Below, one piece after another: positions 11,507-45,665 of a DNA stretch of 64,000 nucleotides (its first letter is position 1; the number at the start of each line of letters is the position of its first letter). The stretch comes from Thalia democratica (lineage: Eukaryota): contig OZ241826.1 of assembly GCA_965202585.1 (NCBI GenBank), forward strand, positions 30,690,001 through 30,754,000. The letters run 5' to 3'. The notes under the pieces are model-generated. The model ran no database searches. It worked only from the letters and a program-made list of their open reading frames with translations, and was not told where the DNA came from. A program made the translations under genes and the position numbers.

Positions 11507-11999
11507 TTAGTTACAAGTTGTATTGTTAGTAGACGGGTTTAAACAAATAAACTCATTTACTATTGGATAGCAAGGTCCGTTGTAGTTAGTGTGCATTCCT
11601 CTTACGCTTTCTGGATAAGTACCAAAGTAAGTATTCCAACAAGCAGGTAGTTTACCTTTGCTATTGAAAACGTAATGAAATGAACCGTGAACTTTTTCGT
11701 CATAAACAACACCGTTTGTGAACCATCTCGTTTCAGGATCGATCATTTCCAATCCAACAAAATAGCTTCTTCCAATGCCAATGTTTGTACAACCGCTGGC
11801 AAACTTGTGCAGGGCTTCCAAGTCAGCCCTGTTTGTTATTGGAGCTAAAATTCCGCCTTCCTTTTTGCAAAACTTTTTAGCTTCTTTTCTTGTCACCATC
11901 TTTTCCGGGTAAAAAGTAAACTTACCGCTGGTAGTTGTAACTGATGTGTCATCACAGTGTTTGTTTGCAGTCCATTTAGTACGACGACCCATATTATTG
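11507..11999 (-). CDS. C-type lectin-like domain protein (single large exon; 5' exon not located)
   Basis: 161-aa ORF with KFTFY...EAKKFCKKEGGILAPI, YFVGL, C...C...FICL pattern. Acceptor TTTTTTTTTCAG at 12000-12001. No EPN/QPD or WND calcium motifs. Confidence 0.8.
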
Positions 12000-28300: not shown

Positions 28301-29131
28301 ATTTAAACGTAGTTTTTCAATACTGTAACTAAAACTAGTTTAAACATTCTATTCAGTACTTTTAGCTATCAACACGTAGCTTTTACAATATAAATTGGTA
28401 TAATATTGTTACTTTTAAATAGTTCAGGTTAATAATTTTTTTCATATGCTTAAAGTATAAAAAAGTTTTGTAGTTGAATAAAGATATTTTTATAAATATT
28501 TTCAATAGGAGTAAACCTGACTAAGTTAATAAAATTTGTTTTATACTTAGGTTTAGTAATACTAATAAACATCACTCTGATTTTACTAATAAACAAATTT
28601 TATCTAAAGTTGGCATAACTAAGTTTTTATTTTAAAAACTGTTTGTACTTCTTTCGGTAATAATTTAATTTTAAACTTATCAAATTTTTGATTTTTTATT
28701 TTAAAAACAACTTAAAATACTCACGAAAACAATAAATACTGTTTCCAAAATTAGTATAATATACTTGACAAGTTGTAAAAAATTAAATAATTCAAATACT
28801 TCTATTATCTTTTTGTAGTTAAATCAGGTTTTAGATTCGAAGTGGAATTTTAGAACATTTCTGTTAATGTTTGACATTAAAAACCAAAAGTTCGTCGAAT
28901 TTCATAAATGGAGAAAAAACAAAGTTTATTTGAAAAAATACAGTTTTTCTAGCACTGTAAAGCATATGACGTGATTAGGTAGACTGCATTTCAGAACACT
29001 GTGTGGTATTAATGATCTCAATATACGCTTTAATATAACATTTACAAGTTTTATATTAGGTTAGTATAATTTAAAGGTATTGTAAAAGTAAACTAATAGT
29101 TATAAATATTTCGTGTATGTGTCACGTAAGT

Positions 29132-29245
29132 TGTAGGATAATTAGACTATAGCTCATTTTAGTGTTTATGTTTATACTTGTTTTCTTTTCAGATTTTACA
29201 ATGTTAATAAATTATTAAACTAAATTGACGAGGAGTTATTCTTCA
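29132..29245 (+). repeat. 5' LTR (114 bp)
   Basis: Matches 34183-34296 at 112 of 114 positions; contains AATAAA at 29206-29211. Confidence 0.97.
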
Positions 29246-29279
29246 TGTAAAATCTTATCAACAACCTGAGAAAAGTAAA

Positions 29280-32200
29280 ATGGTTATTGTAAAGTGCCCA
29301 ATTCGTAGATGCGAGTTCCAGACGCCAGGTCTATCCGGTGATGTTGTGAGTAGCCTTCTTAACCTCCACAAAGTGGAGCATCAGCAAAATTCTGAGTTAT
29401 CCAATAATGGAGTAATGCCAAATGCACCTAAATTGATTCGACCAAGGGTTGACCGGGGGATCAGCCAAGAGACATGGCTTGCTTTCATTCGAAGGTGGGA
29501 GGCATTCAAGATTGGTTCGAATATAAGCAACCAAAACGCAAGCATACAGCTTTTTCAGTGTGCGCAGGACAAACTTGGCGATCTTATGTTAGCAAGTGAT
29601 CCTCGACTGATGGCCAAATCAGAAAGTTACGTTGCTAAACTGATGGCGTCGATTGCAGTCATAAAAGTTGCTATTGGTGTAAAGAGAGCAGAACTTATGA
29701 ACCTACATCAGGACCATGATGAACCATTTAGAACGTTTGCCACACGTGTACGAAGCAAAGCAGAAACCTGCAATTTCACTACAGTCAGTGAGTGTGACTG
29801 TGGGAAAAGCAATGTGACGAGCTACACAGAAGAAGCAATAAAAGACGTGATGCTCGCTGGCGTTGGGGATGATGACATAAGAAGAGAAGTTCTCAGTACT
29901 GAAGATATCTTATCAAGGTCATCATTTGATATAATTTCCTTTATTGAAAGTAAAGAAATGGGACGCAATGCAACTGAGAATTCGCGGACCATATCTGCAG
30001 TCTCTTCCTTTCAACGTCAGAAGAAGGGACGTGTCAATATAGGAGATAAGTCCCAACATGTTCCGTGCCAGAACTGTAAAAGACTTTTCTATCCTTTCAA
30101 CGAAAAAGGTAACCAAAATAAAAAGCCTTTCAGATATTGTCTATCTTGTTGGCGTAGTCAATCAAAAAGGGTTAATGCTGTTCAAATCCAAGCTGATCGT
30201 TCTGATTTTATGCAACAAGATACTCAAATAATGTCACTACACGCAAGTAAAAGAATTATGTTGAATAACACCATATTCAGCAAGAAGTCCTTGCGTAAAG
30301 CCAAGGCAACGACTGATCATCCTCGTGCATCAGTCAAGATTGCTAGACATGGCACAAACAAGTTTGCATGGGTAAGTGCTTTAGCTGATACTGGAGCACA
30401 GTCGAACCTTTGGGGCTGGAAAAACTTTCAGGAGGCTGGTTTTTGTAAGAAGGATTTAATGCCTGTATCCATCACAATTCGGGCTGCCAATAAAATTCCT
30501 ATTAACATTCTAGGGGCTTTTAAAGCGACTTTCAGCGGAATGTCTCCAAAGAAGGAGGTTATCAGATGTGATGGAATTGTTTATGTAAGCGATTCAGTGA
30601 CCGGATTCTTTCTCTCCTATGAAACCATGGTTGACCTCCTGATTATTAATAAGGATTTTCTCACCATTGGATCTCAACTGCCTCATCAGCATTCTGAAGT
30701 TGCTGTAAGTTCAAATGAAAATGATCCGAATAAACTGGACTCGCATAAAGATGTGACCTGTGATTGCACGCCAAGGAGTAGAGTGCCAGACCGACCAAAC
30801 AAACTTCCGTTTGAGGCAACAAATAAAAACGTGAGCAAAATGCGTGATTGGCTCTTACAAAGGTACGCAACTTCAACGTTTAATGTATGTCTACATAAAT
30901 TACTCCAGCAAATGAGTGGACCTCCACTTGAGATACATTTGGAGAATGATGCTAAACCACGTGCTTGTCATACACCAGCTCACGTGCCAATTCATTGGCA
31001 GAAACAGGTTGAAGCAGATCTCATTCGAGATGTGAGGTTGGGTGTCTTAGAACGTGTCCCATTTGGTGAACCTGTAAGCTGGTGTCACCGCATGGTGGTC
31101 ACCAGGAAACAGGATGGGTCACCTAGGAGGACAGTAGATCTCTCACCACTTAACAAGTATTGCAATAGGGAGACGTGCGCTACAGATACTCCGTTTAAAC
31201 TAGCGCGCAGAATTCCAAAGGGAACGTTCAAGACTGTAACAGATGCATGGAACGGGTATCATGGAGTTCCACTGAGAGAAAGTGATAAACACCTCACTAC
31301 ATTTATCACTCCGTTTGGCAGGTTCCGATATACTAGAGCACCTCAAGGCTTTGTATCATCTGGTGATGGTTACAATCGACGATTTGCAGCTATTTTATCT
31401 GATTTTGAAAGAAAGGAGAGGTGTGTTGATGACACCATATTTTTTGATTCAGAATTAGAGTGTCACAGATGGCGAACAATAGATTTTCTGTCAAAAGATG
31501 GTAATGCAGGCATCATTCTAAATCCAAAGAAATTCCAGTTTTGTCAAAAGTCCGTTGATTTTGCTGGATTTAGAATTTCTGATGAACGTATAGAACCTCT
31601 GCCCAAATATCTGGATTCCATTCGCAATTTCCCAACCCCAAAGTCTGCCACAGATATACGCAGCTGGTTTGGTCTGATAAATCAAGTCGCAAATTATGCC
31701 AAACTTCGTAAAGTCATGGCACCGTTCAGAGATTTTCTCAGTCCAAAATGTAAGTTTATGTGGACAGAAAAATTAAACCAATCATTTAATGAATCAAAAG
31801 AGATAATCATTGACGCAATAAAGAGCGGTGTTCAAAGTTTTGATCTTGGGAAACTGACTTGTCTTAGACCAGACTGGTCAAAGCAAGGATTGGGCTACTT
31901 CCTTATGCAGAAACACTGCAAATGCAATAGCCGGTTACCAGATTGCTGCACCACCGGCTGGAAAGTGACGCTTGCAGGTTCAAGGTTTCTGAATGGGGCA
32001 GAAAAGAATTATGCTGCCATAGAAGGGGAGTCGCTTGCTATTGCTTGGTCATTAGAACAGACAAAGTATTTCACTAAGGGCTGCAAAGATCTTGTGGTTG
32101 TTACGGATCATAAACCACTGGTAAAGATTTTTGGTGATCGCACCTTAAACGAAATTCACAACACGCGCATTTTTAGGCTCAAACAACGTACTTTGCCATG

Positions 32201-33854
32201 GCTTTTTCAAGTGCATTACATGCCAGGTAAAACTAATCTAGCGGCAGATGCTGCATCGCGTTATCCAAGCTCGATTAATGAAGTTAATTCACATGATAAT
32301 GATTTGACTAACGAATCACTTCTAATTGCTTCATTGAGTAATGAAGTATGCCATTCAATGGCAATCACTTGGGAGGAAATTGTAGAAGAGACACTAAATG
32401 ACAAAGTTCTTTCAAGAGTATCCAGGTGTGTTGAGGAAGGTCGAAGCTTGAAACATGATGAGTCTTTGTCAGCGTATTTTAGATACGATGATGCATTGTA
32501 CTTAAGTGATGGGGCTATACTTTACAAGGACAGAGTAGTAATCCCCGTCAGTTTACGATATCGGGTCCTCAACAAGTTACACTCGGCGCACCAAGGAGTC
32601 ACATCAATGCATACTCGTGCCCAACAGATTGTCTTCTGGCCTGGTATTACACAAGACATTGAAGCAATTCGGGCCAATTGTAAAAGCTGCAACCGCAATT
32701 CACCTTCTCAACCATCATTACTACAAGAAGCATCTGATCCTCCTACAAACCCTTATGAAAAAATATTCGCAGAATTTTTCCAGTTTGCCGGAAACAATTT
32801 TTTGGTAGTCGGTGACAGGTTGTCAGGTTGGTCGGAAATATTTTCCACACCCAGCGGAACCTCTCAGGCAGGTTCACGTGGGTTGATTAAGTGCCTCCGA
32901 GTTTTGTTTTCCAGGTTTGGAGTACCTGAGTAAATATCGAGTGATGGTGGACCGGAATTTACGTCCAGTGCAACAAAGGAATTCCTTAAAACCTGGGATG
33001 TCACGCATCGAATATCTTCAGCTTACTATCAAAGATCAAACGGCAGAGCGGAAGTAGCCGTCAAACAGGTAAAAAGGTTGCTAAGATCAAATGTTGACGC
33101 TTCAGGAAGTCTGGACAATGACAAGTTTTTAAGTGCGTTGCTCCATCTGAGAAATACTCCTAATAGCGATTGTCAAGTGTCTCTAGCCGAGATCATATAT
33201 GGACGTCAGCTGCGAGATAGTTTCTCATTCTTGAACAAACTTCACAAATTCTCCAATCCTAATGTGCGACCCATGTGGAGAAAAGCATGGAAGCTTAAAG
33301 AAGAGGCGCTCCGTACAAGGTTTGTTAAGAATTCAGAAGTACTTAACCAAAGAGCCAGGGATTTGCTGCCTCTCTATGTTGGCAGTAGGTGTTTACTACA
33401 GAACCAGAGTGGCACTCATCCACGTAAATGGGACAGAAGCGGAGTGATAATGGAGGTGCTTCCACATGATCAGTATGTAGTCAGAGTTGATGGTTCACGG
33501 AGACTTACTCGGAGGAACAGAAAATTTTTAAGGATGTACAACCCAGCCTCAACAAGCATTGAAGCAAAAAATTCCCATGGTTGGAGCAGTAATCTACCAA
33601 GCTCACATGAGTGCAATGTTGGTCCTCAACGTCCTGATTCTACTGTAAAGATTACAGAGGATTCCAACAGTGCCAATAGTGGTAAAACCAGTGAGGTTGA
33701 AGCGGATCATGAAGAGGTTGAGGAAGAGTACATTCCTGCTCCTATAGTTCACAAAAAAAATAAGGTGCCGCTTGCTTTGCGTAGGTTGAAAGACTTCAAT
33801 GCGCCAGGGAGGCTTGAAAGTGGAGTACTCCAAAGTAGAAATCACCGTAAGTGA
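29280..33854 (+). pseudogene. Single gag-pol polyprotein ORF interrupted by one in-frame TAA (32931-32933) in integrase
   Basis: Protease ADTGA; RT ...TTFITPFGRFRY...PQG...CVDD; RNase H DWSKQGLG...YAAIEGE...TDHKPL; integrase HHCC (LHSAHQG...CKSC) and FGVPE*ISSDGGPEF...SNGRAE. The 33078 ORF is in the same frame as the 29280 ORF. Confidence 0.95.
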
Positions 33855-34182
33855 AGTCTGTTTGTTCCTGTTTATACAAAAGTTTGTGCTGAGTGTTCTA
33901 TTGATGCTGATAGTGATGATTGCTGAGCCAGGAAGGATTCAGAGTGGAATAGCATGAATTTGTATTGTTGTGGATTTATTTAGTGCGTTTTATTGCAGTT
34001 TTGATTTTTTTCAAATAAACCCCTAGTTTAAAGATTTTTTATTTAAGTCAATTGAGTTTTTTTTTAATGCATAAAATTTAGTTTCATCTTAGTAAAATAT
34101 TTTTGTTACTTGTTTAAATCCCCTCTTGACGAGCTATGTCATTGCTTTAAACTTGTTATTATCTTTAATGAGCTGGAGGGGA

Positions 34183-34296
34183 TGTAGGATAATTAGACTA
34201 TAGCTCATTTTAGTGTTTATGTTTATACTTGTTTTCTTTTCAGATTTTACATTGTTAATAAATTATTAAACTAAATTAACGAGGAGTTATTCTTCA
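34183..34296 (+). repeat. 3' LTR (114 bp)
   Basis: Preceded by PPT, followed by TSD TAAGT. Confidence 0.97.
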
Positions 34297-35077
34297 TAAG
34301 TTTAAACGACAATGTCACAAATTTTGAAAGAAAAAGAAACAACACTAGAATCTTTACAATTATTGATCAGGTCAATTCTTAATACCTGAAAAAAAAGCAA
34401 TGGTAGATTTATTTTTAATTTTCATTAAAATAAACATTGCTTTTTTTGTTTGATTCAAGGAATACAACAAATTATCAAACATCCTTCAAATAAAGTGTGA
34501 GCACAGTAATTAAAAAGCATAGTGAGATTTTGTAACCTATAAAAGTAAGAACTTAAAAAAAAATAAATAATATTTTAGAAGCAAACACAATAACAAAAAG
34601 TGTATAAGAGGCTACTATAATAAAACCACATTTTTTTGAAATGATTTTTATTTTAAGTAAATGTTTGTTGAGCTGGTACGTATAAGTAACTCAGTGTAAC
34701 AACATAACATAGCATGGATCATTTTAAAACTTTTGTTTTGGTATCTAGATTAATAATGGAAAAGTCTGAACTTATTTGGAATTAGTAAAACATTTTTCAA
34801 TGAAGGTTTTGATCAAGTTAGTGCAAGGCTTTGGTTTTTGGTAAATTGTTATTAAAACTAAATCTACATGTTTCATAATAAATACTTAATTACTTGCTAG
34901 ATTTTATCTGACGTACTTAATCAGTCAATGATTGTTAAAAAATCAAATGTTTTGAATTTGCAAAGTATTCGTTTCAATAATTTTTGAAATTAAAGGTATA
35001 ATTTTTCATTCTGAATTTGAGTTGTAGAAGTTAGTAATGAAATTCGCTCTCAAGTACTTATAGCTAAGAAAGTGTCC

Positions 35078-44229: not shown

Positions 44230-45665
44230 TTACCAAGTGTTCTTGCAACCAAACGGTGCAGGAACTTCTACGAACGCGTACTTCGAGAAAGTGGTGGCTG
44301 TTACGTCACAACTTTCAACCGACCAATCGCGTGCTTCCACGTCGTAAATCGCCTTTTTCTGGCAGCATTTTAAAAATACAACCAATTGGCTTCCCCGAAT
44401 CGAAACGGCGCACGCGCGCCGACCGAGGTCAACTTTCACGGGCGGCGTTCTCAGAAACACGAAGTGGTCGCAGATGGAGTCGAAGAGCTCGCAGGTCGCG
44501 GGCCCGCCGCCGAACACGAATAACTTGTTTCCGATCGTAGCTAGCTGACAGTCCGTTCTTTGCTCGATCATTCTCGGCATGAAAGTCCACTCGTCGGCTG
44601 CGCTGTCGTACGCTTCCACGCTCGACAAAATCCTCCTGTTTTGGATGTTGCCCTGATCCTGCAATCCGCCGCACACCACAACCTTGCCTCTAAAAACCGC
44701 GCTTCCCGCTTGCGCTCTCGACTCCTGCAGCCTACCGACTTCCTTTAACCCGTACCTTTTCGCATCAAACCTGACGCAGCGAGCCTCTGTAAAATTTTCA
44801 AACATGTCACACCACCAGCCGCCGATTACGTAGATGTGGCCCATGAAGGCGCACAAGCCGAAGTAGTCCGCAAATAGGTCCAGGTCAGGCAGGTCTTGCC
44901 ACTCTTGTTCGCCAAGCGGCAATTTTTTAACCTGGATGTTCTGCGTGTTGTTTTCACTGCCGCCGAAAACGTAAATACAGCCGTCCACGCACGCCGAAGC
45001 CCAGAACTCCCGGTATTGAGGAAACTCCAAATCTGCGCATTTCTTCACCGAGCCATTTCTCCCGTAAATTCGCTGCACGGACTGGGTCATGCTGCATATG
45101 TTCCTGCCGCCGACGACCACTAGGTCCAAGTCGTCGCAGCGCCTCGGCTTAATATCCTTGTTTCGGGTTTTCCCCTTCAAGACGTCGTCGATCAGCGAGC
45201 TGCAAGTTTCGCATCTCCGAAACGCCAAAGACTCATTTAAAAATTGATCCAGTTCGCGATTGGAAAGCAGAGGAAGACGGACTTTCACGAGGAGGCGTGT
45301 TGAATACTTGCGCCTCTCCGCGCCTCCGAAGCTCACCCAGCGGTCGGCGACGCGAAGCACCTCCATCTCCGACGTGACTTTCAGCTTTGAACTGGACAAA
45401 ATTGCGCTCAACAGCGCGAAATCGAGATGCAGGAAATTTTGGCTTCCGGCAACTGCGACGAAGAAGCGCTCAATGCAGCGCAATGTCGCATTTGAAAATG
45501 AGGGCATGCCGAATGTTTTCGCCACCTTGTGGTAAGTCGCCACGTTTTCGAGGTTCATTTTGTCGCTCATGAGCTCGACGATGTCTCGTTTCACGCTTTC
45601 GTCTAAAATGAAATGTTCGGGATCGAAAGGATGAAACGTTTTACTCCGGTCGTTTCTCGTTGTTC
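44230..45665 (-). CDS. Kelch-like protein: BACK domain plus about 6 Kelch blades (large exon; upstream exon not located)
   Basis: Acceptor TTTTCACAG at 45666, 1436-nt open exon. BACK motifs (FLHLDFALLSAILSSSKL.V.SEMEV...W, VRLPLL) and Kelch GG motifs (VVVGG, IYVFGG, IYVIGG, VVCGG, LFVFGG) with VEAYD...W. Markedly GC-rich versus flanks. Confidence 0.9.

Follow-up and report, generated by a model that had tools for sequence, protein, structure and literature searches.

To our knowledge, self-priming of reverse transcription has been demonstrated experimentally only for Tf1 of fission yeast; elsewhere it has been proposed in silico, largely for elements of the Tf1/sushi group and two plant lineages. 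Where the same type of complementarity is seen, the mechanism established for Tf1 has been inferred for Tj1 and the Tf1/sushi group as well (PMC4600332; bioRxiv 10.1101/2022.12.06.519325). This group is a monophyletic, chromodomain-bearing sublineage of Ty3/gypsy elements in fungi, vertebrates, and some plants, with self-priming as its common feature, and the RNA of Tf1 forms a three-duplex "pretzel," in which the pairing of primer and site is accompanied by two duplexes of site-adjacent and LTR sequences downstream of the primer (bioRxiv 10.1101/2022.12.06.519325; PMC4600332; PMC6317226). For the vertebrate members (sushi-ichi and its relatives), self-priming was predicted because LTR and primer site are complementary, according to the summaries of Butler et al. 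2001 given in PMC4600332 and PMC6317226. In silico predictions for the plant elements Tcn1 (Ty3/gypsy) and TAR (Ty1/copia) have the mechanism recurring outside fission yeast (PMC6317226).

The Ty3/gypsy element in the window and its primer site

The DNA analysed here (the window) is a stretch of 64,000 nucleotides from Thalia democratica (assembly GCA_965202585.1, contig OZ241826.1, forward-strand positions 30,690,001 to 30,754,000), numbered from its first letter. It contains a complete LTR retrotransposon of 5,165 bp at 29132-34296 (Table 1), which is also present in assembled contigs from marine plankton libraries. The features by which Ty3/gypsy (Metaviridae) elements are recognized are all found in it, namely, LTRs with TG...CA ends, a target duplication, a polypurine tract, the characteristic order of pol domains, and a reverse transcriptase (RT)/RNase H nearest to that of Ty3. 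The Pfam domains of pol follow in the order RVT_1, RT_RNaseH, Integrase_H2C2, and rve (the last scoring weakly), with a zinc-binding domain in the integrase. In a profile search, the RT-RNase H region had its best solved relative in the RT/RNase H of Ty3 (4ol8, E = 4e-39), and the element is therefore assigned to the Ty3/gypsy type; the AlphaFold model of the same region has a mean pLDDT of 52. Gag-pol of the window copy is interrupted by one in-frame stop (32931-32933) and otherwise forms, in tblastn comparisons with the full-length relatives P0001 and P0020, one frame to 33818. The window copy is apparently a young retrotransposon.

Table 1. Features of the retrotransposon in the window (positions are those of the window)
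Feature	Position	Strand	Basis or remark
Left target-site duplication, TAAGT	29127-29131	.	Same 5 nt after the 3' LTR at 34297-34301
5' LTR, 114 bp, TG...CA	29132-29245	+	Direct repeat of 34183-34296 with 2 differences; limits set by target duplication and polypurine tract
Inferred U3	29132-29190	+	Part of 5' LTR
Inferred R-U5	29191-29245	+	Part of 5' LTR; only ~55 nt
Predicted self-primer (presumed first 11 nt of the RNA)	29191-29201	+	Reverse complement of 29245-29255
AATAAA polyadenylation signal, within inferred R	29206-29211	+	Read directly
Predicted hairpin with AAUAAA across its 5' arm and loop	29203-29229	+	Minimum-free-energy folds; a similar one predicted in most relatives
Predicted U5 hairpin GAGGA / UCUUC, abutting the primer-site duplex	29230-29244	+	Folds
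Primer-binding site ATGTAAAATCT (last LTR base and next 10 nt), no TGG	29245-29255	+	Complementarity
Single gag-pol frame: protease DTG, reverse transcriptase CVDD box, RNase H, integrase	29280-33854	+	ORF list, translation, Pfam, tblastn
Polypurine tract GAGCTGGAGGGGA, adjoining the 3' LTR	34170-34182	+	Read directly; relatives have ...GGACTGGGGGGA there
3' LTR; its copy of the primer sequence (34242-34252) reads AGATTTTACAT	34183-34296	+	Direct repeat of 5' LTR
Right target-site duplication, TAAGT	34297-34301	.	Matches 29127-29131

Directly 3' of the 5' LTR, the 10 nt TGTAAAATCT (29246-29255) contain no TGG and are the exact reverse complement of AGATTTTACA at 29191-29200. This was the starting observation of the preliminary description, and it was confirmed by re-reading of the sequence, as were its statements that the 3' LTR variant lengthens the pairing to 11 nt and that an AATAAA lies just downstream of the primer. 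Since the limits of the LTR are fixed by the target duplication, T29246 lies outside the LTR and the 11th pair is made by the last LTR base, A29245. The sequence found in the 3' LTR is also the commonest form in the family, in which 29245-29255 are exactly complementary to 29191-29201 over 11 nt; the 5' LTR of the window copy reads AGATTTTACAa, and its 10-nt pairing is the result of one later change in that LTR. In 29 independent insertions of the window family that were sampled from the genome, the 11-nt pairing is perfect in 24, is broken by a single mismatch in 4 (the window copy included), and shows a double change in 1. In the window family as in its relatives, gag starts 11 to 35 nt after the LTR with no TGG in between, and so there is no space for another primer site.

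Short A/T words recur often in a genome of ~25% G+C, and the complementarity could be read as a chance inverted repeat in very A+T-rich DNA. When complements lying within a few bases of the LTR end were counted in 20,000 dinucleotide-preserving shuffles of the LTR, the probability was 0.0026 for a complement of at least 11 nt and 0.011 for one of at least 10 nt. Against the chance reading thus stands a probability of about 0.003 for a single element, to which the comparisons described below add further evidence.

Gag and protease, both in the window copy and in the full-length relatives, have no Pfam match, and the integrase core scores weakly. The Gag N terminus (29280-29380 in the window) and those of the relatives share a conserved pattern, MV(I/V)x(K/E)C..P.C.F.T ... 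H....H, that resembles a CCHH zinc finger; the usual retrotransposon Gag family of Pfam does not match the proteins that bear it. Elsewhere in the window, a host-like exon at 44230-45594 (minus strand, 454 aa) encodes a BACK and Kelch-repeat protein and occupies the only other G+C-rich stretch, and a host-like open reading frame at 11507-11992 (minus strand) has a weak C-type-lectin match. These frames, like the occurrence of the element in plankton libraries, accord with a marine animal as host.

Covariation between primer and site

The RT-RNase H region of the window protein has more than 2,300 homologues that are 69 to 74% identical to it, from the sea anemone Nematostella, the coral Oculina, the fishes Festucalex and Synaphobranchus, and many marine metagenome contigs; across 27 members, the mean column identity of this region is 86%. 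LTRs were sought in eleven foreign elements (L092 to L102; L097 and L102 come from the Tara metagenome and L094, L098, L099, and L100 from ENA assemblies), and nine of them have the same arrangement, each with a sequence of its own. The LTR sequence and its partner (the last LTR base and the following nucleotides) are GACTTCCTCAT and ATGAGGAAGTC in Nematostella (L092), GGCTCCTTCAT and ATGAAGGAGCC in Festucalex (L093), GGCTCTTTCAT and ATGAAAGAGCC in Synaphobranchus (L095), TGTGATTCTTCAT and ATGAAGAATCACA in L094, ATGATGATTTTCAT and ATGAAAATCATCAT in L098, AACGATTTCGTCAT and ATGACGAAATCGTT in L099, GAATCATTTATCAT and ATGATAAATGATTC in L100, AGATTTAACAT and ATGTTAAATCT in L102, and AGAGGAACAT and ATGTTCCTCT in L097. 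No LTR was found in the short contig L101, and no post-LTR complement was found in the copy from Oculina patagonica (L096), which is shortened and defective. In the latter, the LTR still contains AGAATGATTCCTTCAT, and the expected complement is replaced by three tandem copies of the 9-mer TGGTAATCA (L096:3111-3140), possibly the trace left by aberrant priming or strand transfer.

Eleven elements (the window family, its L025 variant, L092 to L095, L097 to L100, and L102) were aligned by anchoring them on the last LTR base, a MAFFT alignment of the segments from R-U5 to the site having misplaced the primers. In all 11, the element's own pairing is perfect for 10 to 14 nt counted from the last LTR base. 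The first three pairs (primer CAU opposite AUG) are invariant, positions 4 to 10 are Watson-Crick paired in all 11 elements and position 11 in all but one, and each of positions 4 to 11 is occupied by two to four different Watson-Crick pair types. Not one G-U wobble occurs among the 87 pairs at these eight variable positions, and the primer of one element pairs with the site of another over 6 nt at most. Such strict Watson-Crick pairing with zero wobble fits the copying of one partner from the other in each replication cycle better than it fits selection for folding alone.

A second family in the T. democratica genome (family B, L104 to L106) has 104-nt LTRs, in which AGATTTTATCAT pairs with ATGATAAAATCT over 12 nt; one example is found on contig 7 near 58834709, and several copies have long open gag-pol frames. 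With family B added to the 11 aligned elements, 12 lineages keep a perfect complement of 10 to 14 nt at the same anchored place, each with its own sequence. DNA searches of the T. democratica genome with the two closest foreign elements gave no useful matches. Within the window family, both LTRs of one copy on contig 8 (L025/L031) read AGATgTTACAT, and its primer site reads ATGTAAcATCT, a variant absent from all other copies compared in the genome; since the change is common to both LTRs, it predates the insertion. From a single-change rate of 4 in 638 sites, a Watson-Crick-preserving double change is estimated to arise by chance in any of the 29 copies with a probability of ~0.004. Thus, the complementarity of the two 10-mers described for the window copy is conserved and covaries among the 12 lineages, with Watson-Crick pairs throughout and a compensatory double change in one natural copy.

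By these comparisons, the chance inverted repeat is effectively refuted: the unrelated and partly G+C-rich 10- to 14-mers occupy the same anchored position in 12 lineages, and one copy has a compensatory double change. The same data bear on a host tRNA, tRNA fragment, or other host RNA acting as the primer, with the LTR match being secondary or coincidental, for which there is a precedent in the half-tRNA priming known in Ty1/copia elements (PMC6317226). Of the five host tRNAs recovered, none matches the site, itself devoid of TGG, beyond 6 nt; these were the real tRNAs in an RF00005 search in which 63 of ~69,000 candidates were scored, most of them being one repeated tRNA-like match. The site differs in every lineage and always matches the element's own LTR, as it does in both families of this genome, and the L025 copy has changed LTR and site together. 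A tRNA conserved in the host cannot be what pairs with sites that vary from lineage to lineage and between two families of a single genome. Priming by a host RNA is accordingly considered very improbable.

Several observations concern the genomic setting of the copies. L002 (contig 1, 30199126), 520 kb upstream of the window copy, has the same flank and differs at 7 of 3,199 bases, and the window element therefore lies within a recent segmental duplication. On contig 8 (65.10 to 65.49 Mb), the copies L033, L036, L037, L038, L051, and L052 lie on one strand within 400 kb and have the flank attcaatattct in common, a sign that the block was amplified locally. In L037 and L038, at the least, there is also a partial LTR ~570 nt inside the element; it joins the R-U5 of the window family to unrelated upstream sequence and may represent the nested LTR of a sister family whose U3 is different. 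On contig 6 (~22.75 to 24.12 Mb, L064 to L091), ~60 matches to the same tRNA-like stretch recur every ~16.03 kb, first on one strand and then on the other; the pattern is that of a very large array in which a 16-kb unit is repeated in tandem within two oppositely oriented blocks, and the unit could be mitochondrial-DNA- or rDNA-like.

Among the relatives, identity in pol and kinship of the hosts are discordant, with ~80% identity between the coral and pipefish elements, ~78% between those of Nematostella and the eel, and ~69% between those of the two anthozoans (P0009, P0020, P0023, P0038). This pattern suggests either horizontal spread among marine animals or very old paralogous lineages; RT/RNase H identities of at least 70% across phyla may likewise reflect horizontal movement between marine animals.

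Predicted transcript, RNA fold, and priming

The distance from the A of a YAG motif to the end of the LTR is 53 to 72 nt across lineages, and the length of U3 varies from ~40 nt (family B) to ~540 nt (L100); a constant distance combined with a variable U3 is the pattern expected if this A is the transcription start and the rest of the LTR is R-U5. In all lineages checked, the A either opens the complement or precedes it by no more than 5 nt, and AATAAA or ATTAAA follows the primer in every lineage after ~5 to 15 nt. The window primer begins at the A of TCAG, and TTCAGATT fits the YYANWYY initiator pattern with +1 at 29191, the start predicted in the preliminary description. A start at exactly this base is, on these sequence features, slightly favored over other positions. 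A TATA-like motif upstream is unconvincing as promoter evidence in DNA of 25% G+C. Assembled RNA-library contigs from Logan span the whole element, including the LTR, at 90 to 99% identity, one of them ending at 29170 and others running through the whole LTR, although assembled contigs of this kind cannot show the start or prove transcription.

The RNAs from R-U5 to the primer site are predicted to fold with a closing stem formed by primer and site, and their z scores against shuffled sequences are -1.9 to -4.4. In most lineages, the predicted structure is a three-way junction of this stem, a hairpin with AAUAAA, and a GAGGAG...CUUC hairpin that abuts the site; in the relatives, the latter recurs as a stretch of purines and, after it, a stretch of pyrimidines that reaches to the LTR end. 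Any duplex using sequence downstream of the site scored no better than shuffles in the 10 validly scored elements.

From its anatomy, its conserved and covarying complementarity, and the absence of a tRNA-type site, it is highly probable that minus-strand DNA synthesis in this element is primed by its own RNA, as in Tf1; we infer the transcription start, the cleavage of the primer, and its extension as the steps of such a process. Transcription would begin at or within a few bases of A29191, giving an R-U5 of ~55 nt. The first 11 nt of the RNA would fold back onto 29245-29255, or pair there in trans with a co-packaged RNA, and this duplex would close the three-way junction, with the AAUAAA hairpin and the U5 hairpin abutting it. 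RNase H of the element would then cut after the invariant CAU (the cleavage of an RNA duplex being assumed by analogy), and the freed 3' end of the primer would be extended through U5 and R. Copying of the RNA primer during later plus-strand synthesis would rewrite the primer site in each cycle and so keep the complementarity strict.

The pairing between LTR and post-LTR sequence could instead be a conserved RNA structure that serves packaging, dimerization, translation control, or masking of the 5' polyadenylation signal, with an unrecognized primer in use. The stem of primer and site does close a structure that holds AAUAAA in a hairpin, reminiscent of the poly(A) hairpins of retroviruses, and the case for self-priming at this element is built on sequence comparison. 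This alternative is nevertheless improbable: no other candidate primer site lies ahead of gag, the duplex is in every case anchored exactly to the final base of the LTR, where the 3' end of a primer must sit, and the lack of G-U pairs at the variable positions fits copying better than folding selection alone. Self-priming, the preferred reading, is what the preliminary description had proposed, with the mechanism and geometry of Tf1. The covariation and the compensatory change speak for the mechanism; the geometry is close to that of Tf1 without being identical to it, since the last LTR base takes part in the duplex and no third duplex like that of the "pretzel" was found.

Comparison with known self-primed and marine elements

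The description of the window copy as an animal element with no evident chromodomain stands, none having been found in it or in four full-length relatives. Pfam searches gave no Chromo match at E <= 1 in these four relatives and no match at E <= 0.01 to the integrase tail of the window copy, and in the Atlas the C-terminal 300 aa have integrase C-terminal families, and no chromodomains, as neighbors. The literature searched, to which neither Butler et al. 2001 nor the original papers by Levin belonged, yielded no account of a nonchromoviral animal Ty3/gypsy lineage that self-primes.

The sequence comparisons support an extension of the Tf1 type of priming to animal elements that form a large, compact, and widespread group, for which they supply natural compensatory-mutation evidence. 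On a broader view, which is put forward tentatively and at somewhat less than even chances, a large chromodomain-less Ty3/gypsy lineage of cnidarians, fishes, and marine zooplankton could self-prime independently of the Tf1/sushi chromoviruses through a simpler three-way-junction RNA, the mechanism having either arisen more than once or been ancestral in LTR retroelements. If such independent self-priming is true, these elements would escape host silencing aimed at tRNA primer sites. An abundant family with LTRs of 104 to 114 nt, an R-U5 of ~55 nt, and many diverged relatives that keep the pairing offers natural covariation data in a very compact system. It raises the questions of how RNase H recognizes and cuts an RNA duplex, of whether self-priming evolved repeatedly or is ancestral, and of the evasion of small-RNA defenses that target tRNA primer sites (PMC7472051). 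Annotation pipelines that define primer sites by tRNA matches will mislabel the whole family.

Steamer-like (Mag-type) elements resemble the present family in their size (~4.8 to 5 kb), single open reading frame, short LTRs, and marine animal hosts, and the primer site of MchSLE1, an element of that type with a DSG protease and a YxDD box, corresponds to tRNA-Asn (PMC11046912). Identity with the Steamer-like/Mag elements is ruled out, as the present family has none of these three features. The plant elements Tcn1 and TAR are similar in that their self-priming was also deduced in silico from an LTR-internal complement of the post-LTR sequence, but they belong to other hosts and lineages, Tcn1 being a chromovirus related to Tf1/sushi and TAR a copia element. 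The vertebrate Tf1/sushi elements are, like the present ones, animal-hosted Ty3/gypsy elements with predicted self-priming, and relatives of the present family occur in fishes as well; however, the former are chromoviruses by their chromodomain and monophyly (bioRxiv 10.1101/2022.12.06.519325), whereas no chromodomain was found in the latter.

Compared with Tf1, the present family, known here from sequence alone, resides in an animal host, has no detected chromodomain, has an unusual CVDD box in its reverse transcriptase, and encodes a Gag and a protease that have no Pfam match. Its duplex takes in the last LTR base, and the predicted RNA has two local hairpins, one with the poly(A) signal and one in U5, in place of the three-duplex "pretzel." Tf1 and Tf2 of Schizosaccharomyces pombe, Tj1, and Tosmo likewise have no tRNA-type primer site. 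The family further resembles Tf1 in having a single gag-pol frame in an element of ~5 kb, a predicted stem beside the primer site that is formed with U5 and appears analogous to the stem named U5-IR in Tf1, and, at the presumed 5' end of the RNA inside the 5' LTR, ~11 nt that are complementary to the downstream edge of that LTR.
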